Shown piece after piece: positions 14,582-55,445 of a stretch of 64,000 bases of DNA. The DNA comes from Gracilinanus agilis (Eukaryota): the NCBI RefSeq assembly GCF_016433145.1, contig NC_058132.1, forward strand, positions 7,688,211-7,752,210, read 5' to 3'. How positions within the stretch are numbered: position 1 is the stretch's first letter; the number at the start of each line of letters is the position of its first letter. The notes under the pieces were generated by a model. That model saw only the letters and a program-made list of their open reading frames with translations. It was not told where the DNA came from and searched no databases. The position numbers and the translations under genes were made by a program.

Positions 14582-15225
14582 ACTGAGCATGCGCAGAGCC
14601 CTCCCGACCCCCGCAGTTGGCCTGACCCATCGGGAACGTGGGCGATGACCGGAGGGATGCGATTGGGCATGCGCGGAGGTTTCGCAGTTGGCCTGGTGGT
14701 AAGGGCCCAGAAGCGTTTATAAGAGACTGAGCATGCGCAGAAGCTCGGCGGCCAGGCTATCTGCAATGTGGGCGGTCTCCGGAGGGAGTGAGACTGAGCA
14801 TGTGCGGAGGTTCCGCGGCCAGACTGACCATCTGGCTTATGGGCGACCAGGAAAGCGGGGTGAGACTGAGCATGCGTAGAGACTCCGCAGTCTGACCATC
14901 TGGGCTTGAGGCTTTTACAGAAGGTGGGATAGGATGAGCATGCGCAGATGGTCTGTAGCCAAACTGACCTAGGATTCGGGGAGGCCATAGTAGGGGTTGA
15001 TATTGAGCATGCGCAGTACCTTGGCCGATTCGCTTAAGAAAGGGAACTTGGGGCGGGGGTGGGTGTGGGCGTGGGTGAGAGAGCATGCGCAGAGACTCAG
15101 TAGCCAACACCTTCTGGAATGTGGGCGACCAAAGCAGGGGGTGAGTGAGCATGCGCAGAGGTTTCTCAGCCAGCCACCAAGAATGTGGGCGACCAAAGGA
15201 GGTGAGGATGAGCATGCGCAGAGAC
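14582..15225. promoter_or_regulatory. Degenerate tandem array (~69-bp unit) with 10 NRF1-like motifs (TGAGCATGCGCAG)
   Basis: GCATG(C/T)G cores start at 14587, 14667, 14731, 14798, 14870, 14938, 15007, 15083, 15149 and 15212. Confidence 0.85.
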
Positions 15226-16959
15226 TCAGCCATCAGCCTGACTAGAAGGGTAGGGACTGGTACGCGGGAGGGTTGAGGCTGCCCTTGTGCAGAGGCTCCG
15301 CTGCTCCAGGAGGGCAGCTCGGGCCTCTCTTACTCCATCCCGGCCTCTGGCACGTGGACGGTGCTGGCCGAAATGTCGCTTGATGCCGGGAGACTCAGAT
15401 GGACGCCCCGCTTGTGTGACCGTCACTCCCCGCATCCCGTCACCTCAGGTCCCCTCCGAGCCCCCTCTTGGGCATGTAAAGCCCCTCGCTGCCTCCTCAG
15501 GCCCCGCCTCTTCAGAACCCCCGCTCTGTGGGCAGCCTCTGGGCCTTTGGCCAGGCCTGCCCAGGTGTCCTTCCAGGCTCACTCCATCCCCAATCCCCAC
15601 TGGGGTTTGAGGCATCAGAGGGTTCCACTGGTGACCCGAGTTCCCTTGGCTCCTCTGATGTGGAGAGTCACACCCCGAGTGGATGTACCCCCGTGAGCAG
15701 TGACTCGGGTGCCCCTTTTGACCCTCTCAGCAGCTCAGAGGGGAGCCTCTTTCCTGTCTGCATTTCATGGAGGAGCAGATAGGTGTGGTGACTGGCCCAG
15801 AGTCACTCTGCAGGCACCAATGAGGGTCCACGGGCGGCCATCCCCTATCCTAGAGCTGAGGGGGTCCCCACGCCATCCCCCGTCACCTTCTGGCCTTGCC
15901 TGGGCCATCCCCTGGGCATGGCCTGTGCCCACCCCCCTGGCACAGGGCAGAGCCCACAGAGGACCAAGCAGGACCCATACCCCTGCCTCAAGCCCCAGAG
16001 AGACACACTCTCTGTCTGAGACATGGGCACTGGCCAGCAGGGGCCCAAGATGGACAGAGGAGCCAGGCTGAAGGGCTGTAGAACCTCCTGGCTGACCCTG
16101 GGAGCGATGGGGAGCTCCCAGCCGTCTGTGGGGGGCAGTGCGGACACGGCCAGAGCCCACCTTCAGGAAAAACCACTTGGGCGGCCTGGTGCTGGGGAGT
16201 TGTGGCGGGGAGAGTGAGGAGGGACCCATTGAAGAAGTGCGGCTCCACGAGCACAGAGACTGGACTCCGAGGAGATGCTGGGGCTGAGCCAGTACTCTGG
16301 ACAGCAGCCAGGAAGCCGTTGAGAGAGCTGAGCCACTAGGACTGGGGCCAAGTGAGGCTGCGGATGTGCCTGCGCACTCCTGTGTAGACGCGCCTCAAGA
16401 GATCCGTCTGTACCCATGTAAGAGAGCCGGAGCGTCTAGACCAACTCTAGGAATACACGGACACGTCTCCATGACAACGTCCATATTTATACCAGTGTAG
16501 ACGGGATTTGTAAGAAGGCAGGTGGAGCCGTGGGTAGCGCCTGGCCCAGGCAGACCCTCCCAAGCCGCGGGAGGAGCCAAACACCACGGAAATGATGGAG
16601 AGATGTTGGTCTGCCCTCCGCCAACTCGCTCCTCCAGTAGACGCGACACCGGCCAGAATCGAGACTGGAGACGATAACGATGGACACTAGAGCCGGACAC
16701 TTGCCCGGGGATAGAGGCGCAGCCAGGGCCCGTGTGCCAGGGCCGGAAAGCCATCTGAAGGAGGGCCAGTGGCAGATCGGGCCAGAGCGAGGATGGAGAT
16801 CCCGCCGCTGACCCGGACAGAAGGCCTCAGCACTGACATACGGTGGGATGGGTGGGAGCCCAGGAGGGCACCAGGCTTCCTTCCAGGCTGAGCTTCTGGG
16901 TAGGCCAAAGCCTCGAGCCAGCTCTGCAGTGGACAGTGTCCCTAGACATCAAGAGGTAG

Positions 16960-20337: not shown

Positions 20338-21227
20338 TTAGGGGTTTACATTTAATATGGAAAAGCCAAATCTATAGGAGAGTGAAAGCCCAGCAAGAGT
20401 TTTGGTCTTGGGGATCTGAAGAACATTGAACTGATTCCTAGAGCAGCTCTGCCCCTTTCAGAGGCAATGGCCTTCTTGATTTAGTGACTGCGCCTAGAGC
20501 AGGGTACAGAAAGATTTGCAGATGCCAGGGGCCAAGGAGAGGTCGCCTCAGCCGACGAGGCTGGACGGGGCAGGAGGCGGGTGGCGATTTCAGGAGTTGT
20601 GGGGAAATGCTGTTCATTTGTGGAATGACACAATAAGAGCATTAGCTAACGTTGGCATGGTGCCTACGCGTGACGGGCACCGTGCCAAGCGCTTCACGAC
20701 GATTGCCTTACCTGATCCTTACAACAACCCAGGGCAGGAGGTTCTGTTATTATCCCCAACTTATAGATGAGGAAAATGAGGCAGACTGCAGGGAATGACT
20801 TTCCCTGGGTTCCCCAGCTGAAAAGTGTCTGAGGCAGGAATTGAACTCACCTCAGTGTTCTGAGCACTGGGCTGCCTGGCAGTACCTTGAAGTTGACTGT
20901 GAATGACTAGTTTTTGGTTCTAATCCCTCAGACATTTCAGAACCACCCAAAATGCTGGGGAGAATGTGATGGAGTGTGAGCAGGAGATGAGGGGAAGGAC
21001 CCTGTGGAGGGGAACAAGCCTCTGGAGCACAGCTGGCCCACACCAGGACCTCTTTTTTGGGTGCCCGGCCCTCTCGGGGCAGCCTGTGATGGACACAGAA
21101 GAAGGGTTTGGAGACTGGCCGGTGGGGACTATGCTTGGGAGTCACGGGGTCTGACTGGCGGTCTTCCTCACTTTGATCTTTCCCTCCAGACCCTGCCCTT
21201 CCCCAGGACAGGAGCCAAGAAGAAGGA

Positions 21228-21260
21228 ATGGCTTCTGGGTGGCTGCCTGTCAGGCTCCAG
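21228..21260 (+). CDS. Gene 1 (KRAB-hAT fusion) first coding exon, MASGWLPVRLQ (exon 21190..21260)
   Basis: Acceptor ttccctccag at 21189; ATG 21228; donor CAG|GTGAGT, phase 0; same size and position as the MAAGLLLPRAQ leader of gene 2. Confidence 0.8.
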
Positions 21261-23695: not shown

Positions 23696-23986
<291 letters not shown>

Positions 23987-24351
23987 TGAAGGACCACCTT
24001 GTTTTTTGTTTAATGTGCAGGAATGGCCAAAAATGTATATCATTTGGGGTGCATCTGTCTGTCACTTAGATGCTCCCCATGCACAGGTTGTTCCCAGCTT
24101 CCTGTGGCCAGCCTTGAGGCTGTCAATTCTCTTCACTCCTTTCCCTTCAGTTGAAAATTCTCCATAGTCACAGGGCAGATGAAGAAAGAGCCTCCTCTCT
24201 CAGCAGGCTATGGGAGAAGGGAACTCATTTTCTTTCCAAACCCAGATCATCTGTGTGACCTGCTTTTGGATTTGGACAGACTTTTCCTCCCCATCTAGGA
24301 TGGAACTCTGAGATGGCCCTGTCTCCAGTCCTTTCCCATTTCTATCCACAG

Positions 24352-24453
24352 GAGCAGGGCTGCCAGTGACCAAACCAGATGTGATCTTCCAGTTGGAAAG
24401 AGGAGAAACTCCATGGATGCTCAAAGCAGAGACCCCCAGAGTCATTTATCCAG
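24352..24453 (+). CDS. Gene 1 KRAB-B exon
   Basis: Phase 1-1, 102 nt (alternative in-frame acceptor at 24358 gives 96 nt); GAGLPVTKPDVIFQLERGETPWMLKAETPRVIYP; donor CAG|GTGAGG. Confidence 0.95.
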
Positions 24454-24873
24454 GTGAGGGAGGGAGAGATTCCTTGTAAGTAGCTGGTCCACCAATCATG
24501 TAGGTGTTCTCCTTAAAGCCTTAAGGCATTTGGGGAAGAACTTAAGGTGGGAGGGGATTCTAGCATTAATTTAATTTTGTCATTTATTTCTTGTCTGTCA
24601 CCACATATTTGCATCCTCTTAGAAATAGATGATCTTTCTCTTTTAACTATTGGGGGGCTGGACTTTTGATTCTGTCAATTATGTTGATTTGTAATTGATT
24701 CCGTTTTTTACTAGTTTTTCTAATACCCAATAGATAAAAAAATCAATGGAAAATTTTCAGAAAAAAAAGGGACAAACTGAACTAAAATAATGTTCTACCT
24801 CATTAATAATGAAAACCACATGGTACAGTCTTATGTCAGACAGTTTGCAAAGGCCATTAAAAGCAATGATACT

Positions 24874-25060
24874 GGGGGGGCAGCGAGGTGGCTCAGTGGT
24901 TAGAGAGCCAGGATTATCAGGGTTCAAGTATACTTCCTGTATACTTCCTAGCTGTGTGACTGTGGACAAGTCACTTCACCCCTATTGCCTAGCCCGCTTT
25001 TCCGTCTTGGAACCAATACACAGTATTGATTCCAAGATGGAAGGTAAGGGTTAAAAAAAT
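24874..25060 (+). mobile_element. SINE1_Mdo-like SINE
   Basis: ggggcagcgaggtggctcagtgg...ggtaagggttaaaa; degenerate aaaagcaatga TSD. Confidence 0.85.
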
Positions 25061-25259
25061 AAAAGGCAATGACATTCAATGTGGGCAGTTTTGTGGAAAT
25101 ACAGGAACATACACTGCTGCTGGATTCTTTGGATTCTTCCTGTTTGTGATGTCCTATGGCCTGATGACATTCACTTTGCTCTGTTTGGCCATCATTAATA
25201 ATTGGACATTGGGGTTCCCCCACCAGTTTTTGCTCTCCTGAATAATCTAGTATGAATCC

Positions 25260-25620
25260 TTTTGTATAAAGGTATGTGCTTTTGTCAGCGGGCTCCCTGG
25301 ATCCCGCCGCTTGGATCGTATCCTGCTGTTCTTTTTTCCAGTAAGTGTATAACAGCTTCTAACCATCCCAGTGGCATAATCATGCGCCTGTTTCTCCACA
25401 GTCCCACCGACACTGAATTATTTCTGAGATTTTGGGGGGCCGATTTAATGGGTGTGAGGTGGCATCTCAGAGTTGTTTTCATTTGAAGGTTATAATTATT
25501 GGAGAACTCAAACAGTTTTTCAGGGGGTCGGTGATCATTTCTGATTTTTCCCTTGAAGATGCCATCTTCTGCCTCAACCATGTATCTGTTTAGAAACATC
25601 TTTCTCTGATGAATTTAGGT
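25260..25620 (-). mobile_element. L1 ORF2 fragment
   Basis: Minus translation MKTTLRCHLTPIK...CSVGLWRNR..MPLGW resembles the L1 ORF2 C-terminus. Confidence 0.65.
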
Positions 25621-26694
25621 CTGGCACCATAATTTTTGAATAGGCTTTTTAAACCCCCTTCTAGGACTGCTTTTCTCCCCTGAGGCTGCTCCATTTTCTT
25701 TTATGTAAAATGTATGTGTTGCCTTTACAGTCTAACTGACGTACCAGCCACATTTCTGATTCTTTCCTAGAAGGGCTCCTCCCTCAGCGGGTGCTGCCTT
25801 TCCCTTGGTTGCACCCCGGAAACGTTTCAGCCCAGTAATTAGGGAAGGTCTCCTCTTGCCAGAGTTTGTCGATGCATCACGTTCACTGTAACGGGGCCTC
25901 CCCCCCCCTTCCCGGAGAGCATCATTTACACCGTTGTCTTCGGCAGGTCCAGCTCTTCGGGACTCCGTTTGGGATCTTCTTGGCACAGACCCCGGAGTGG
26001 TTTTCCATTTCCTTTTACAGATGAGGAAACTGAGGCAAACAGGGTTAAGTGGCTTGGCCAGAGTCGGGCAACTACTAAGTATCTGGAGCCAGATTTGGAC
26101 TCCGGCCTTCCTGGCTCTGGGCGCTCTGGAGCCACTTCTAGGAAAGCATGAATGAATGGAGGCCAAAAGGGGGGCCACTAAAGCCAGGAGTCAGATCGGG
26201 CAGCGTCTCGGGGCCAGCAAGGCAGCTTTTCTTGAGGCTCTTTTCCACACGCTGGTGTGTGCTTATGAGAGGCCTGCAGGGGGCTTCGCCGGCCCTCCAA
26301 ACACCCCAAGGGGGGCTTCTGCGAGGAGCTCCAAGCCCTCCCTGAGGGCCTCACAAGATGCGAGGGCCGTCCAGTGGGGCCCATCTGAGCACGTGCGCTC
26401 TCTGGTCACACCTTCGTATCGTTTTGTCTGAAGAAGCGGCAAACCGGAAAAAAGCAGAGCAGGGAGAGCTTCCCCGCAGCCCCGCAGGCTCAGGGTCCGG
26501 AGGGCCAGGCCGCCCCGATTTTGTGCCCCGGAGAGCTAGGAGGGGCCTTTACGGGATCCCCTCCACCACCCTCGCACCCAGGGCCTCTGTGGGGCGTGCT
26601 GCTTAGCTGCTGTCTTTTGTCACGAGGGCCGGAGCCAAGAGCAGGTGGCCAGCGAGGGGTCGCCGTACCAGAAAGGCTCCTCTTCCTAAATTAA

Positions 26695-26860
26695 AATCTG
26701 GCCTCAGACGCTTAACAGCTAGGTGACCCTGGATAAGTCACTTCACCCTGTTGGCCTCCATTTCCTCCTCCGTCAAAGGGGCCAACCAGTCCGTTTTCTT
26801 TGCCAAGAAAACCCCAAATGGGGTCACAGAGCCGGACAGCCAAAACACCCGAATGACTCA
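26695..26860 (+). mobile_element. MAR1-type CORE-SINE with RTE-like tail
   Basis: ctttgccaagaaaaccccaaatggggtcacaga tail; similar copies at ~30295-30420 (+) and ~31590-31760 (-). Confidence 0.75.
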
Positions 26861-27401
26861 AAGCCCCCGTTTTCAGCGATCGCTCTTGTCTGTAGACGTG
26901 CATCGTGGGCCATCTGCTGCCCTTCCCCAAAGCGGGGTGAGGCCCCCCTCGTTTTCCTCGGCCGCTTTAGCCCAGCCCAAGGAAGATGGGGTTCCCGCCC
27001 CAGCCTCGCTCCTGGTCAGTCTCCCTGCCTGGTTTTGTGTTTTATTTTTATTCCCCACTTGCTGACCGCAGGCTTTTGTGTGTTTTATTTGAACAAACAG
27101 GCAGCCGGGCACGTTTTTGCTTTGGTGGGTCACGATTTCAAATTGTTTTCCATTTAGGGATTTTCCGAGCTCTTCCCTTGTGCCTGGCTTGGTGTCCCCC
27201 AAGAGCTCCATGGAGCGCCTCGTTCTGGCGGCCCCGGGCCGGAGAGGGTTTGTGGGGGGCAGAGACGCCCCATTTCTTCTGTCCCCTAGCGGCGGCCCGG
27301 CTCCCCCTCACTCTTCGTTGTACCCGGTCCGGAGGGAGGCCCTTCTTCTGCTGGCAGGGAAGGACTTGGCGCTGCTGACGGCGCTTTACGTCTTTCCTCA
27401 G

Positions 27402-27538
27402 ATTCCCTTCGGGAGCCTCCAGGGACTTTGGCCGCCAGAAGTGGACCCAACGACACCGGCCCGTGTCCCGAGGCAGGAGGACGCGGGGGAGGAAGGGCAG
27501 AGGGCCAGGGCGGCCCTCCCCGGAGCGCCGCGAGCCAG
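27402..27538 (+). CDS. Gene 1 linker exon (phase 1 to phase 0), DSLREPPGTLAARSGP...PPRSAASQ
   Basis: Acceptor tctttcctcag at 27401, donor CAG|GTGAGT at 27538/9; 137 nt, open, and exactly the phase needed to join KRAB-B to the transposase exon. Confidence 0.75.
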
Positions 27539-28029
27539 GTGAGTGTCCCTGAAGGCGAGACCTCCGGGAGCCCTTCAGTCGGGGCCAGCCTCCGTCCTGG
27601 TTCCGATCCAGACTTGAGAGAGGGATGGAGAAGGTGGGAGTAGCGAGGATGGCCCAGCCCAGCCGGGCTGACCCTGGCGTCACAGACACACGCGTGACGG
27701 CGTCGGCTTTGGCCCTCCTTGCTGACCCGAATGAAGCGAGCCGCCTGCTTCGCGTTGGAATCCCGTTCCTGCACTCGTTCGCCCACTCCAGGCCTCATCG
27801 GGCATTTCTCGGCAGTCCGGCGGTGGCGCTGCGGTCAGCCTTGGGATGAGAAAGCCCGATAACGAGTTCTGCAAAAAAGGTGTAGGTGAAAAGGAAATGC
27901 GAGCTAATCCAGGACTTTAGCGTCAAGTGGTGCCATTCCAAAAATCACATAGAGAAAGCGTTACCAGAATTTTGTAATAATCCTCAGCCAGTGTGACTTT
28001 TACTAACCTAACATGAAATTGTTTTTCAG

Positions 28030-30207
28030 ATCATTTTCCCCAAAACACCAAAACGACAAAGCGATCTCTTGGGTTTTTTGAATGTAAAGAAGGTGAAAAC
28101 AGAGACAGAAAACAAGGGCAGGAAGGAGAATCCTTGCGAAGCTCTGACGCCGACGGGAGCCGCTTTTGGGTCCGCCGAACAACCCATCGCTGCAGAAAAG
28201 CCATCGTGTTCGCCAAAGGAGGACGGCGACAGCCTTTTGCTTCCGGACTGTTGGAACAAAAAACAAGCATTTCTGTTTACAGAGCAGTACAAGTGGCTTG
28301 AAATAAAAGGAGGTAAACTAGGCTGTAAGGATTGTTCCACGGTTCGGCACTTGGGAGTGGCGGCAGAAAAGCACGTCCATGTCTCCAAGGAGTGGAGCGC
28401 TTACTTAATAACCCCAAATGGCAGTAACAAAGTCACGAGGCAGGCGGCTCTGAGAAAGAAAATCAGGGAACACGACGTTTCCAAAGCCCACACGAAAATC
28501 CAGAATTTACTGAAAGAATCCGCTGACGACTCCATCTCAAATATAGTACGTAAACTAAACAATAAAAATATTGATGCTACCGTAAGGGTCTTCCAAACGG
28601 TTTATGGCTTAGTAAAGCGCAACCGGCCCTTATCGGATATTGAGGGGGCCATAGAAGTTCAGGAGAAAAACGGCGTAGACATAGGCAGCTGCCTACGGAC
28701 ACGGTACAGCGCCACGAGGATAGCGGAACACATCGCGAAGGAGATTCGGATGGAGCTCTTCAAGAGCATCGTAGAAGAGGAGGCCAAAATCTGCGTCATC
28801 CTCGATGAGGTGGCCACGATTTCGAAGAAGAGCACTCTAGTGATCCATCTGCAGTGCGAGGCTCCGTCTTCCCCTGCACCCACCATGGTCTTTGTCGCTT
28901 TAAGAGAATTGGCGTCCACCACCGCCCAGTGCGTCTTCGACACTCTGTTGTCTACTTTGGACGACTGCGGCTTCACGAATGACTATTTGAAAGCGAATTT
29001 AATTGCGTTTTGTTCTGATGGCGCTAGTAAAATTCTGGGAAGAAAGTCCGGACTACCTGCAAAGGTATTAGAAAACTTTCCCAAAATCATCTTTTGGCCC
29101 TGTTTAAATTATCGGTTGCAGTTATCACTTGATGATTCAATATCGGAAATAAAACAAGTTAATCATTTAAAAATGTTTCTGGACAAAATGTGTTCTATTT
29201 ATCACCAATCCAATAAAAACCAAACTGAATTAGAAACTGTCGCTAAAGAACTTGAAATGGAAATAATTAAAATCGGCCAAGTCCTGGGCCCAAGATGGGC
29301 AGCATGCAGCTTACGCGCTGCTACTGCTCTTTGGCATGTATATCCTACGTTATATTCCCGTTTTTCCCATTCTTCTTCTTATTCTGGTTTGGTGAAGAGA
29401 TTAGCTAACGTTCATTTCTTGCAAGACCTTGCTTTAATGATTGACATTCTTGAAGAGCTTTCATTTCTTTCAACTGCGATGCATTTGCAGTCGAGATCCA
29501 CTGACATTCAGAAAGCACAAAAATTAATCAAATGCACCATCAAAGCTTTAGAAAGATTAAAGATCGTCCCAGGAAAGCATGAATCTCAGGTGGAAGATTT
29601 GATGAAGTCAGATAAGTTTAAAGGCATTCCATTTAATAAAAACAATACACTTCATCCTCTTCCTAGGAGTACGTTACTGGAAAATATAATTCAGCACATG
29701 AATTTGTGTCTCTTATCGGATGATGAGAACATTTTTCATTATTTTGATTTACTAGAACCATCTACTTGGTCTTTTGAGCAAGTAACTTCACCATGGAGAG
29801 CTGGTGAAAAAAACTTATATCGCTTAAGTGAAATTTTAAAATACGAAATTGATTTGGATGATTTTCGTAATTTTGTAGATAATGTAGAATCAAACAATGT
29901 TCCAATACCTGCAACAATCCAGAAAGCTAAAAAAATCATTAGCATCATTGCCATCGATACAGCTGAAGCTGAGAGAGGTTTTGGTTTAATGAATATGATT
30001 TGTACGAGGGTGAGAAACAGTTTAACAGTAAAACATGTATCAGATTTAATGACAATTAATTTATTGGGAAAAGAATTAGCAGATTGGGATGCAACTCCGT
30101 TTGTCAAATCATGGTTAAATTGCAACCATAGGCTGGCTACAGATACGAGGGTTCGGCAGAAGTCAACGAGAGCATTCTGTAAGAATCCATTGGCTCTATG
30201 GAATTGA
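28030..30207 (+). CDS. KIAA1586: Gene 1 terminal exon: intact domesticated hAT transposase, KIAA1586 homologue (TTF-type Zn finger, DDE core, C-terminal dimerisation motif)
   Basis: 725 codons without stop; branch point TACTAAC 28001-07 and acceptor gtttttcag at 28029; motifs CKDC...HDVSKAH, ILDE (28804), SDGA (29017), PRW (29293-98), AEAERGF (29971). Recalled human KIAA1586 shares e.g. [50 protein letters not shown]. The symbol denotes homology; orthology is unproven. Confidence 0.92.
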
Positions 30208-32223
30208 GTAATAGAGAATGTATTTCATTATGGATTGTAAATTGTGTGCTGTGCATCCTTTATATCAGTAAAATGTATTGTAACTGTATATAGAGTCACT
30301 TAACCCTGTTTGCCTCTGTTTCCTCATTGGGTTGGAGAAGGAAATAGTTAACCACTCCAGTATCTTTGCTAAGAAGAATCCCAAATTGGACCCAAAGAGT
30401 TGGCTATGGCGAGGATGAACCCATTGGGAAAAGGAAGTGATGTCATAACAAAATACAGAAATAACAAAAGGAGACCCGTCGCCTCTGATGACAGAATTGA
30501 CATGGTTTAAGCAACGTGTCCCTGAAGCGACTGAGCACAGTCAGTGAGAGTTCCACAAAGCGAAGGTTGGGAACGACTGAGGGAAGAACAACTTTCTTGT
30601 AGAGAGCTGCTGGGCGACGGTCAGAAGCGAGATGGGGAGCGTCGCTTCCTGCCCCGGAACGTTATTGCCTCCGCTTCATCCCGTCTCTCTTCGGTTCCGA
30701 GGTAGTTCTTTACATGTTTCCTCTCCCATTAGCCTGGAGACCTCTTCTGCCTGACACTCACCCAGGGCCTGCCGACTGACAGAAAAGTGCTCCATGGGTT
30801 TGGCAGAAGAAAAGCGGGGTGGTCACAGGCGGCGTGTCTGGAGGGCTCGGGGTCCCTGTAGGGCCTGCAGCAAAGAGCCGAAGACATCTGAAGCCAGCAT
30901 CCTGCTCTCGGGACACCTGATGAAAGGACCGAGAACGAACTCCTGGGTGGCGTGAGGAGGGCTGCCTTTGCCTCGTGCCACTCTCCTTGACCAGAAGACA
31001 GTGTGCTCGAGCTCAGAGGTGGGAGTCGTTCGACCGCTCGTCGGCATCCGAGCCGGGTCCCAGAGGAGGGTCGCTGCTGGCCCGTCCAAAAGGGACTCCC
31101 TAAGGAAGAGCGGATCAGGCCTCAACAAGGAGGCACACAGGAGGTCACCTAGGAGCCGTTTCTGGGGGGGACTCCAGCCAAAAGGGAGCTACAGATGACC
31201 CCGAACTCTGTTTGCAAGAGTGTCACAGACTCGTGGGGGTGCCCCGTACCAACTACAGCTCCACTAAATATTTGTCTCTAAAAGCGGTCCCCGTCGTGAC
31301 TAATGATGGAGGCTTGAGAGGATCCCCTCGAATGTCTGGGAGGCGAGTGGCTCACTCATTCTACCAGAGCCTGGCGTGAGGGGCGTTGGGTGAGCCCAGA
31401 GCGTCTGGGCCGTGGGAGGGACCTGGGATCCGTCCCGGAGGGCAGCTCGCCCTGTGGTTGAGAGCTGAGTAAAACGATTTTATCTACCTCTGTCTGCTGG
31501 TGTCTTTCCAGTCCTTGTTTTAATACCCAAAGTAGCAAATGACAAAAGTGGCCACGAAGGCTGTTTGAAGATTTCCAAGAGGGGAAGCAACCATTCCACT
31601 GTGGTCGTCATTCGGTCCCTTCAGCCGTAGCCATCTCTTCATAACCCCATTTGGAGTTTTCTTGGCTTCTCCAGCTCATTTACAGATGAGGTAAACAGAG
31701 TTAAGGGACTTGCCCAGGGTCATACAACTAGTGAGCATCAGAAACCAGACTTGAACCCTGGATTTCAGACCCTGCCCACTCTCCACTGCAGCACCACCGG
31801 CTTACCACTTTTGAGGCAGCTGTAACCGATAGGAAGTTTTTTCTCGATAGTGAGCCTAAATTTGCCTCTGCAACTTTCCCTCCGATGCGCCTGTGGCAGA
31901 ACGAGACTGTCCCTGCTCCACATAAGAACCATCTGCCCGTTTGGAGGCATTACTGTGTGCCCCCGAGCCTTCTCCAGGATATACATGCCCAATTCCTTCA
32001 ACTGACCTTCATCCGGCAGGCTCAGTGTCCTCCCGTGGCATTCCGGAATCGGAGGTCCTCGAGCCGGAGCACCCAGAGCACCCAGATGATACTGTAGGGG
32101 GTGGTGATGAAGTAAGATGAGCCTATCACACCTCTGCTCCTGGAAGTGGCATCCTTTCAATGTAGCCCCAAATTACATGAGCTTTTTGGACCTCTATCAC
32201 ACGGTTGGGTTATGTTGTTTTGA

Positions 32224-43264: not shown

Positions 43265-44207
43265 TGTAGGATTTAAATTAATGCGCAAGACATTAGGTAT
43301 GGATGGGGACGAGGACTCGTGGACCAGGGATCTGGGGTTGGAGCCGAATGGGAAAGTGGCTGACTACTGGCCTTTGATAGTCGGGGAGAACAGAGCGAAG
43401 AGAAGGGCTGGAGAGCCTCAAGGCTGCAGTGAAGAGAAGCTCCAAGCAGCGAGGATGGATGAGGCGACAGTTATTCGGGTTCTCAAGAATTAGTGGCTCT
43501 AAAGAAGTGGAAGCCGAGGGTTGCCCATCCCCGGGGGCGTGAGAACGCGAAGATGCGGGGTCGGAGGAGCAGAAAAGCCTGGAAAGCCTGGTAGAACCCG
43601 ATGCAAAGCGGAGGGAGCAGAACCCGCAGGAGCGGCATCCGCGAGCAGAAATCTTACTGGACGATCCGCTGTGGACTAAACCATTCCCAGCACAGCCCGG
43701 GGGTCCCAATGAAAATGCTGCCCGCAGCCCAAGAAGGCCACCTGCCACGGTACTTCCTCCGTGACATTTCTGTTGTATGTGCGCCGTGTCATGACACGGA
43801 AGTATGTTTTACACGAACGCGATTACATCCACGACTAGAGGCGAGCGAGAGAGGAAAGCTCAATTTGAGGTCCGGAACTGTCAAGGGCGCCAGTCGTCCT
43901 CATCCTCTTGGTCCTCCCCGCCCTTTAGCACAATGCCCGCAGTCTACCACGTAGGGCCTTATACTCCGTGCTTTGGTCCTCGCTTTCCCTACTCTCGCTT
44001 CCCTCCCCTGCCCTCTCCTGGTCCAAGAGGTTACCCACGAAGTCTTATACACTCGGCGTTTCTCCTCTCCACAGAGCCCGGCCTGGATTCGCCACAGCGC
44101 CTGCGCACCTTCAACTCCTCCCCCTCATTCATGTTCCTCCCTCCTTTTCGCCTCCGTCCCGGACGCCCCTCGGCCCAGCCGGAGGCCGGGGGACTCCACT
44201 TCCCACA
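43265..44207 (-). mobile_element. Possible CpG-rich LTR-like element
   Basis: TGTAGGATTTAAATT...GGACTCCACTTCCCACA termini resemble marsupial LTR ends and it truncates a MIR; no TSD found. Confidence 0.35.
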
Positions 44208-47541: not shown

Positions 47542-47620
47542 NNNNNNNNNNNNNNNNNNNNNNNNNNNNNNNNNNNNNNNNNNNNNNNNNNNNNNNNNNN
47601 NNNNNNNNNNNNNNNNNNNN
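47542..47620. other. Assembly gap (79 N)
   Basis: N run; both flanks carry nearly the same cgactgggggggggg(c)cgagaga sequence. Confidence 0.95.
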
Positions 47621-51386: not shown

Positions 51387-51953
<567 letters not shown>

Positions 51954-53431
51954 TAAATGTTGCCTGGCTGACTGATCGAGGACTGAAGAGGGGGGACAAC
52001 CCGATGGTCAGTCGGTCAGTCGGCCAGCGTTTAAGGCAGTCCCTGCCCTCAAGGAGCTCCCTGTCTAACAGGGGAGACAATGAAGGGGGGCACCAGAATT
52101 CGGGGGGGGGGCCTTAGAGGAAGCCGGGAAGCTCAGTGGTCAGAGCTAAGGAGGCCAGCCAGAGGACTGCCCCGAGCCCAGAGAAATGGCGTGTTCTGGG
52201 ATCAGCAGGTGGCGGCAGCTTCAGAGGGGCCCTGAATGCCAGCAGCATTTTGTCTTTGCTCTGGAGGCCGCCGGGAGCCGCTGGACGTTACCGAGTCGGG
52301 GTGACACGGTCAGAGCTGCCCTCTAGGGACGCCCCTTTGGGGGCCCAGCGGAGGGAAAGCCCGGAGGCAGGCGGGCCCGGCAGCCCTGCCGCAGGCCAGG
52401 CGTCGTGGGTGACGGGGTCTGGGCCGGAGCGATGACGCTCAGAGGAGAGAAGGGCCGAGTCTGAGAGACGGGTCTTGCGCCATCTTGGATATGGGAGAGG
52501 GAGAGGGGGAGGCCGGGATGGCTGCCCCTGGCTGCGGAGCCCGAGGCCCGGGAAGTTCTAGGGAAAGCGGCAGCGAGGGAGAACCGTGTCTGCCACACAT
52601 CCAGCCTGAGAAGGCGTTGGAGGTCAGGAGGGAGGCCGGGGCAAGATGGGCCATCCGAGTAAGTGTGGACAGGAGCTGAGGAGTCTCGTCTGGAGGGAAG
52701 AGAGGAGGGCCTGGACCGGGCTGGGAGGGCGCCCTGGGAGGAGGAGGGGAGGCGGAGGAAGATCCTGCAGAGACTGAGATGGAACCTTCAGAGAGGCAGG
52801 AAGGGAGGCAGGAAGGGAGGGGACCCCACTTAGCAGGCCAGGAGAGACAGTGTAGACTGCCGAGGACTGGAGAGCGTTGAGGGTGGGAGCTGGCCGGAGG
52901 GGGAAGAAGGCAGGGAGAGGAGGCAGAGGAGTTTGGGGAGTTTGGCCACGAGGAGCAGAAGGGCCACATCAGCAAGGCTGGGCGTTTCTGAGGGATAGAG
53001 AAGAGGCGGGCGTGTGTGTAGGCAGAATGGAGTGAGCCAGGCAAGGAGAGGTTGAAAACAGGTGAGAAAGGGGTGGGTGGGTGGCTCCGGGCCTAGAGGG
53101 CCTACGGACAGGAGGTCCTGGGTTCCGATCTGACCTCAGACACTTCTTAGCTGTGCCCACTGGGCAAACCACCAGCCCCTACCCTTCTGCCTTTTTTCAA
53201 CACTTACCTTTTGTCATGGAATAAATAGTATCGTTTCTAAGGCAGAAGAATGGCAAGGGCTAGACAACTGGGGTGAAGTGACTTGCCCAGGGTCACCCTG
53301 CTGAGAGGCGTCTGGCCAGATTGGAAGCCAGGACTTCCTGATTCTAGGCCTAGCTCTCTAGCCACTGAACTGCCTAGTTGCCCCTCCTATCTGATGCTAA
53401 AACAGAAGGTTTTGGTTTTGGTTTTTTCTGA

Positions 53432-55445
<2,014 letters not shown>

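Follow-up and report, generated by a model that had tools for sequence, protein, structure and literature searches.

In the 64,000-nucleotide stretch of Gracilinanus agilis DNA considered here (contig NC_058132.1, positions 7,688,211 to 7,752,210 of the forward strand; hereafter the window, to whose own numbering coordinates refer unless a locus is named), a single intact exon at 28030-30207 encodes a hAT transposase in which the DDE residues and the zinc finger have been kept. We put at about 0.7 the probability that this exon belongs to a marsupial-wide gene in which exons for a KRAB domain are fused in frame to a captured hAT transposase, and that the placental gene KIAA1586 is a separate capture. 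In what follows, P numbers denote protein records and L numbers the genomic loci that were compared with the window.

The transposase exon and its product

The exon reads on the forward strand as 725 codons, with the stop at 30205-30207. It opens in phase 0 at 28030 with ATC ATT TTC, and is preceded by TACTAAC at 28001-28007 and then by ttgtttttcag; the phase and the branch point given by an earlier, sequence-only reading of the window are therefore both correct. A word-index protein search with the exon brought up 104 relatives, and a RefSeq protein of G. agilis named 'E3 SUMO-protein ligase KIAA1586 homolog' (P0001) is 100% identical to its product. The window protein alone has no Pfam match at E values up to 0.1, PF05699 (Dimer_Tnp_hAT) included, and for this reason the family alignment and the fold were used to establish its hAT identity. 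Of 20 relatives in the alignment, 14 match PF05699 (best E 1.4e-6), and a match between the family profile and residues 452-507 of the Hermes C-terminus takes in the motif with the catalytic glutamate (E 9e-5). The AlphaFold2 model has a mean predicted local distance difference test score of 74.7, and its top 12 Foldseek matches are all to Hermes, with E values of 8e-9 to 7e-7 and template-modelling scores of up to 0.65 on the target; an RNase-H-like DDE core and an all-helical insertion domain are found as in that enzyme. Hermes, the hAT transposase of the housefly (PDB 2bw3, 4d1q, 6dww), thus resembles the window protein in overall fold and in the C-terminal catalytic-glutamate motif, whereas identity is only 15-17%, the N-terminal zinc finger is different, and the window protein is the product of a host gene and is not mobile.

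The transposase part is clearly under purifying selection. Its frame is intact in ten marsupials, the ratio of nonsynonymous to synonymous divergence (dN/dS) between Gracilinanus and Monodelphis is 0.12 by the NG86 method and 0.17 by YN00, and values across all pairs lie between 0.12 and 0.29.

The KRAB exons

The exons ahead of the transposase (Table 1) were modelled by tblastn with six marsupial orthologues and by direct reading of splice sites. That a KRAB module precedes the transposase here, as the sequence-only reading held, is borne out: KRAB-A matches the Pfam KRAB profile over positions 1-41 of 42 with E 1.1e-26 and contains the DV, EEW and MLENY motifs in a motif scan, and KRAB-B is recognized by homology. 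The Pfam search of the spliced model was made exon by exon. From the ATG of exon 2, which is also the start of koala and Monodelphis isoforms, 33, 127, 102 and 137 nt, or 133 codons, run up to the transposase exon, and the phases of the five exons are compatible with an in-frame fusion of the transposase to host-derived coding exons. The probable first coding exon, with donor G/GTGAGA, is optional, the second ATG being in exon 2; no tandem repeats were found around this first exon. The spacer exon is the counterpart of an exon ending in ...STLSE in other marsupials.

KRAB and transposase occur together in the annotated orthologues of Monodelphis, koala, Petaurus, Dromiciops, Macrotis and Sarcophilus, and the KRAB-hAT gene dates back at least to crown marsupials. 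Throughout the KRAB-type marsupial orthologues the transposase has lost its ancestral ATG, which has become ACA (Thr) in Gracilinanus and ATA (Ile) in the others, so an upstream coding exon is required.

The region of the optional cassette is homologous to sequence within the elements of Panthera uncia and of a second marsupial copy in the wombat (copy B, see below); a GT donor at its end is present only in Gracilinanus and wombat copy B and is absent from the KRAB-type (A) copy of Monodelphis. Together with leader exons at 26853-27014 and 27290-27325, the cassette takes the place of KRAB in P0001. A Monodelphis protein of 198 amino acids, 'zinc finger protein 28 homolog isoform X4' (P0114, at L005), consists of the KRAB and spacer exons of the fusion gene followed by a stop, so the KRAB exons are in that species also assigned to a zinc-finger gene model. 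A search 3' of the transposase exon for decayed zinc-finger remnants of the parental gene found none, and the only zinc-finger array in the window, at 53432-55324, is part of another KRAB gene, located at 51.5 kb.

A splice acceptor supplied by the transposon

The splice acceptor of the transposase exon is supplied by the transposon. Some 60 nt 5' of the exon, comprising the branch-point region, the pyrimidine tract and the CAG, are common to six vertebrate copies at four loci (Gracilinanus A, Monodelphis A, wombat B, Monodelphis B, Panthera and Rhineura), and the common boundary is therefore a matter of homology and not of chance. After the CAG come 12 nt and then the ancestral ATG of the transposase (PK-M-PKRQ). 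In the caecilian Microcaecilia unicolor this acceptor lies inside an element bounded by terminal inverted repeats (TIRs) and a target-site duplication (TSD), from which it follows that the transposon provides the splice site. Unrelated 5' modules join the transposase at one point because the transposon-borne acceptor stands just before the open reading frame (ORF). The copy in the beetle Ignelater luminosus has no clear pyrimidine tract and CAG 5' of its ATG, and the acceptor may be restricted to the family's vertebrate branch. On the other side of the ORF, the transposon-derived stretch of 3' untranslated region (UTR) that occupies 30208-30283 in the window is common to wombat copy B and the beetle element.

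Capture of transposases through splice sites that the transposon brings with it is an accepted route to new regulators, and an acceptor supplied by the transposon just before the ORF was found in 8 of 9 cases (Cosby et al., bioRxiv 10.1101/2020.05.07.082677). The window gene resembles KRABINER, POGK and ZNF862 of that study in that KRAB exons of a zinc-finger gene run into a transposon acceptor ahead of the transposase ORF, and fusions of the KRABINER type have likewise been kept by purifying selection. It differs in deriving from a hAT element of the FAM200/ZBED5 (Buster-like) kind and not from a mariner, in retaining the whole transposase with its catalytic residues, and in being marsupial-wide.

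The hAT family in other genomes

The family is marked by a 14-nt TIR, CAGTGGTGTGCTGG, which in the beetle and the caecilian is accompanied by the 8-bp TSDs of hAT elements. The Ignelater copy (L003, 6695-9499) is a decayed but complete hAT element of 2805 bp with 14-nt TIRs and the TSD TATGTACA, and its DNA is 85% identical to the copy of the worm lizard Rhineura floridana. It was inserted into an intron of a VGCC alpha-2 gene that is read from the other strand, and has subterminal GCCGGTTGTTAAA repeats at both ends. Several decayed copies of the family are present in this beetle, from which seven of the 104 relatives come.

The Microcaecilia element (L007, 42874-47448) is 4575 bp long, with perfect 14-nt TIRs and the TSD CCTCTAGG. 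It is situated in an intron of a KRAB gene model, and splicing from the upstream exons is predicted to enter it at the same point. One predicted upstream coding exon, 43569-43679, lies within the element, and a second, partial copy (P0110) is found on another chromosome.

In Rhineura, isoform X1 (P0105) joins SCAN and KRAB to a transposase of the same family at the same acceptor, and a perfect 5' TIR stands at L004 12821, behind the KRAB exon. This protein is 79-80% identical to that of the window gene and has the same acceptor and a KRAB partner; it departs from the window gene in its additional SCAN domain, its perfect 5' TIR, an early TAG and a very short branch, and it lies at a different locus, in a squamate. 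The TAG closes the frame 10 codons early, and about 0.05-0.10 synonymous substitutions per site (dS) separate the gene from the common node, an unusually short branch. The gene occupies L004 10001-19332 in a SCAN-KRAB-ZNF cluster, with a near-identical SCAN-KRAB neighbour at 24116-25740. Colubrid and elapid snakes (P0063, P0069, P0077) have SCAN and KRAB fused to a more distant relative of the transposase, of about 45% identity, and these are probably further independent captures.

Remnants of the TIRs are recognizable in Rhineura, wombat B, Monodelphis B and Panthera; in the window copy the ends of the element can no longer be recognized. When different loci are compared, homology begins at the 5' terminal block and ends about 76-110 nt past the stop, whereas orthologous loci align for kilobases beyond the ends of the element. 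Collinear matches upstream of wombat B and Panthera were considered as common flank or as MIR-like repeats and were rejected as either: they belong to the 5' end of the element itself, and the beetle, Rhineura and Microcaecilia have it as well.

Placental KIAA1586 and a second marsupial copy

Placental KIAA1586 was compared with the window gene in the snow leopard, Panthera uncia (P0029, locus L002), that is, by means of non-human sequence only. Two small ZNF451-type exons precede a transposase exon at 16842-19019 of L002, a TIR remnant lies about 40 nt behind ZNF451-type exon 3, and no KRAB motif was found at the locus. The protein reads ...SIYHSD up to the boundary and the DNA ttatttttcag/ATTCTGTTC across it at 16842, so that the exon begins at the base homologous to 28030 and the acceptor matches that of the window base for base. 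The sequence-only reading had asserted that the two genes have the same boundary and different N-terminal modules, and both parts hold. KIAA1586 is like the window gene in belonging to the same hAT family (73-75% protein identity), in keeping the DDE residues and the zinc finger, and in its homologous exon boundary, branch-point region and 3' UTR. It is unlike it in that its partner is a set of ZNF451-type exons with SUMO-interacting motifs (SIMs) beside ZNF451, whereas the window gene has KRAB-A and KRAB-B in a KRAB zinc-finger cluster.

Human KIAA1586 adjoins ZNF451 (PMC10095316). The window contains two KRAB genes and a 13-finger array and no ZNF451-type exon. With the ZNF451-type N-terminus (P0029, residues 1-64) as query, tblastn returned nothing in the 64-kb window (best E 0.3) or at the second marsupial locus, and the tandem SIM-PxRP-SIM module is absent from P0001 and from the KRAB-type orthologues, in accord with its reported absence in the sequence-only reading. 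That reading had also named the findings that would count against it, namely a different KIAA1586 boundary, ZNF451-like exons spliced to this exon in marsupials, or upstream KRAB exons at eutherian KIAA1586 loci; none of these was encountered. We favour the view that the window gene and KIAA1586 go back to separate insertions and are not orthologous. For the marsupial gene the RefSeq name 'E3 SUMO-protein ligase KIAA1586 homolog' is misleading, because this gene lacks the module on which SUMO E3 activity depends.

Among the 104 relatives, KIAA1586 with its SIM-bearing N-terminus is present in carnivores, xenarthrans, bats, cetaceans and rodents, and the label 'primate-specific' that it carries in a review of the SUMO literature (PMC8952880) is therefore wrong. 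Table S3 of Cosby et al. gives KIAA1586 as eutherian, with hAT-38_HM as the closest element at 82% similarity and no host domain named, and has no entry for a marsupial KRAB-hAT gene. A literature search on KIAA1586 with hAT or transposon brought no relevant paper, this supplementary table being the only link.

A search for a second marsupial copy in the vicinity of ZNF451 and BEND6 had been proposed on the strength of the sequence alone. There is indeed a second copy, at another place: in the wombat and Monodelphis it lies tail to tail with an SMC4-like gene of 1288-1291 amino acids. This copy B (P0013, P0035, P0041, P0047; L001 10001-12175 and L006 11179-13358) is a single exon with an intact ORF from the ancestral ATG, is without KRAB, and occurs in four marsupial species. 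The 5' terminal block of the element is still recognizable in the wombat and Monodelphis, and the wombat copy has lost 1 nt between acceptor and ATG. Copy B is apparently a separate domestication. The therian loci are thus three, not two.

One position in the transposase divides the copies. Residue 357, the histidine of a WHCLNH motif, is proline in all ten KRAB-type marsupial genes and asparagine or aspartate in all 13 placental genes examined; it is retained in copy B, in Rhineura, in Microcaecilia and in the beetle copies. Its replacement may mark the loss of transposition activity in the two old fusions. A change of histidine to tyrosine, giving LNY, was also considered as a common mark of the KRAB-type and placental genes, and was rejected, being confined to didelphids and carnivores.

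Evidence for horizontal spread of the family

The relationships of the copies, as reconstructed with IQ-TREE, form a five-way star whose rays are Rhineura, marsupial B, marsupial A (the KRAB type), Eutheria, and Microcaecilia with the beetle; within each mammalian clade the branching is that of the species tree. Sites derived in a single lineage number 11, 13 and 6, against 1 to 3 that are common to two or three lineages. A tree including vertebrate and invertebrate elements had been suggested as a check on the sequence-only reading; it took the form of this star, and approximately unbiased (AU) tests rejected no grouping of the therian copies.

The dS values, obtained by NG86, are more telling. 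Between classes they are 0.30 for Rhineura and Panthera, 0.35 for Microcaecilia and Rhineura, 0.38 for Sarcophilus A and Rhineura, and 0.44 for Microcaecilia and Panthera. Between marsupial orthologues they are 0.50 for Sarcophilus A and Monodelphis A and 0.76 for wombat B and Monodelphis B. Copies from different vertebrate classes are thus closer than orthologues within marsupials, which makes vertical descent across classes untenable and argues for horizontal movement of the hAT family among the beetle, the caecilian, the worm lizard and therians. The sequence-only reading had proposed to look for horizontal transfer by setting dS against that of ordinary human-opossum orthologues; the comparison made here, with marsupial orthologues of the family, points that way.

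One taming or several captures

Two origins had been proposed from the sequence alone: one therian domestication followed by relocation and an exchange of modules, or several captures of a single hAT family, each independent and each by way of the same acceptor. The second is the better supported and we regard it as probable, given the transposon-borne acceptor, the separate loci and the low dS, and it extends further than had been proposed, to a worm-lizard capture behind SCAN and KRAB and to a caecilian copy in a KRAB gene. The first, in which the KRAB-type, SMC4-side and KIAA1586 copies would all descend from one tamed copy that was relocated and received new 5' modules, is unlikely. Two sites derived in all therians speak for it, as does an internal 5' block ('exon d') that is common to the three therian copies and was not detected in Rhineura, Microcaecilia or the beetle, and as does the KRAB-type copy in having no recognizable 5' end. 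These must be set against three copies at three different loci with no flank in common beyond the ends of the element, against copy B and the placental copy each retaining a recognizable 5' inverted end at which homology starts, and against the independent captures of the same family that are seen directly in Rhineura and Microcaecilia. A rough star decomposition of the marsupial A and B stems would, moreover, place the common node only about 0.10-0.14 dS before crown marsupials, compared with 0.50-0.76 between marsupial orders; this points, as no more than an indication, to a common source after the marsupial-placental split.

Several observations tell against independent capture or against a KRAB-transposase product. 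The AU tests reject none of the groupings A+B, B+Eutheria, A+Eutheria and the therian clade (p 0.23-0.43; therian clade 0.37). The dating by dS is rough, since it uses NG86 on sequences of differing GC content at third codon positions and on branches of very unequal length. Neither an nhmmer profile nor fuzzy TIR patterns found the 5' terminal block of the element in the window, in Monodelphis L005 or in Sarcophilus L008, for which reason the insertion point relative to the spacer exon is not fixed, and a duplication into the KRAB gene by other means than transposition is possible; the KRAB-type loci have internal element sequence in common to at least -367. Lastly, the RefSeq protein P0001 of Gracilinanus is without KRAB and begins at other upstream exons (26853-27014), and in this species the junction of KRAB and transposase is predicted from reading frame and homology.

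P0001, which starts at 26853 and skips KRAB, could be taken to mean that the Gracilinanus transposase is expressed as a stand-alone tamed transposase with short non-KRAB leader exons, and that the KRAB exons serve other transcripts; Monodelphis offers a parallel in shorter isoforms without KRAB (P0117) and the KRAB-only product P0114. We consider this improbable. The KRAB, spacer and transposase exons all retain their splice sites and have phases that fit together, KRAB-A is recognized as a complete domain, the transposase has lost its own ATG in every KRAB-type orthologue and so requires an upstream coding exon, and six other marsupial gene models include KRAB.

That the gene might instead be an old one, inherited vertically since before the amphibian-amniote split, mostly lost and several times provided with a new N-terminal module, can hardly be credited: the order of caecilian, worm lizard and therians in a quick tree resembles the species tree, but the careful tree is a star with the beetle placed beside the caecilian, dS between classes is lower than between marsupial orthologues about 80 million years apart, the beetle has multiple decayed copies with TIRs and TSD and 85% DNA identity to that of Rhineura, the caecilian copy still has perfect TIRs and a TSD, and the taxonomic distribution is patchy.

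Proposed history and function

If the KRAB-type gene and KIAA1586 arose by independent captures, the following order of events may be envisaged from the comparison of loci. A hAT transposon, of a family that would have spread horizontally and then been captured repeatedly, inserted itself into a gene of a KRAB zinc-finger cluster, in the intron that follows the KRAB and spacer exons. The KRAB exons would then have been spliced in frame into the acceptor carried in the 5' untranslated part of the transposon, 12 nt before its ATG. After insertion the transposase presumably lost this start codon, by change to ATA, or to ACA in Gracilinanus, and the zinc-finger exon of the parent gene can no longer be detected. 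The resulting product would retain the zinc-finger DNA-binding part, the RNase-H-like DDE core, the insertion domain and the dimerization domain. KIAA1586 would go back to another insertion event, in which a member of this transposon family came to lie behind ZNF451-type exon 3 and was captured by way of the same acceptor.

By analogy with known KRAB-transposase fusions, the product may be a sequence-specific KRAB/KAP1 repressor aimed by the zinc finger of the transposase: KRAB would recruit KAP1/TRIM28 to the sites read by the DNA-binding part, as shown for KRABINER. Recruitment of KAP1 and the DNA targets of the fusion are here predictions. The suggestion of the sequence-only reading that both partners connect the transposase to SUMO biology, by way of KAP1 as a SUMO E3 ligase, finds no support; among captured transposases in general, KRAB is the partner met with most often (Cosby et al., bioRxiv 10.1101/2020.05.07.082677).

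Tetrapods appear to have captured this one hAT family at least four or five times, in three cases with KRAB-type hosts, and it is a speculative and rather unlikely idea that these captures were selected as a defence against the family itself. The fusions would then direct silencing by KAP1, or the activity of a SUMO ligase in placentals, to the ends of the family's elements and their subterminal GCCGGTTGTTAAA repeats. Were this so, the parallel loss of the WHCLNH histidine in the two old fusion lineages would represent a convergent disarming of transposition.

Whatever the selective reason, one transposon family provides natural replicates of capture, with KRAB, with SCAN and KRAB, with ZNF451-type SIMs and with no partner, all at one splice site, and these permit direct comparison of what the partner contributes to the same DNA-binding body. 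The family is also a clear case of horizontal transfer on the scale of insect to vertebrate followed by domestication. Existing records are corrected in three respects: the marsupial gene is no SUMO ligase homologue, KIAA1586 is not primate-specific, and the catalogue of fusions is without the marsupial KRAB-hAT gene.

Features of the window

Table 1. Exons, domains and transposon-derived signals of the KRAB-hAT gene in the window
Feature	Coordinates	Strand	Evidence
Probable first coding exon, MWAVSGGSETEH..., ends in phase 1	14766..14859	+	tblastn with Monodelphis P0002 residues 1-30, 87% identity; homology only
Exon 2, ATG 21228 (MASGWLPVRLQ), donor CAG/GTGAGT, phase 0	21190..21260	+	tblastn and splice-site reading
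KRAB-A exon, 127 nt, phase 0 start, phase 1 end	23720..23846	+	Pfam KRAB, motif scan, splice sites
KRAB-B exon, AGLPVTKPDVIFQLERGETPW...IYP, phase 1 to phase 1	24352..24453	+	tblastn with six marsupial orthologues, 61-76% identity; splice sites
Spacer exon, DSLREPP...SAASQ, phase 1 to phase 0, donor CAG/GTGAGT	27402..27538	+	Homology, splice sites
Optional 90-nt cassette, phase 0 to 0, used in RefSeq P0001	27792..27881	+	Homology, splice reading; frame kept
Transposon-derived 3' splice region: TACTAAC 28001-28007, pyrimidine tract, CAG	27965..28029	+	Six copies, four loci
Transposase exon	28030..30207	+	ORF; relatives; profile, fold and conserved-residue evidence
Transposase zinc finger, C99, C102, H148, H154	about 28324-28491	+	Conserved in every row examined
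Candidate DDE residues D259, D330, E648	28804-28806, 29017-29019, 29971-29973	+	Conserved in all rows; D259 and D330 assigned by motif, not by residue-level structural alignment
Putative C-terminal hAT dimerization region	in exon 28030..30207	+	Family profile and Pfam matches of relatives
Transposon-derived 3' UTR, AGTAAA/AATAAA-type signal	30208..30283	+	Homology to other loci ends there

Two runs of N interrupt the window, at 47542-47620 and 54494-54664. The second KRAB zinc-finger gene, at 51387-55327 on the forward strand, has a KRAB-A very near to that of the fusion gene and one open frame with a KRAB-B-like stretch, and its array of 13 fingers (53432-55324) is broken by the latter N run.

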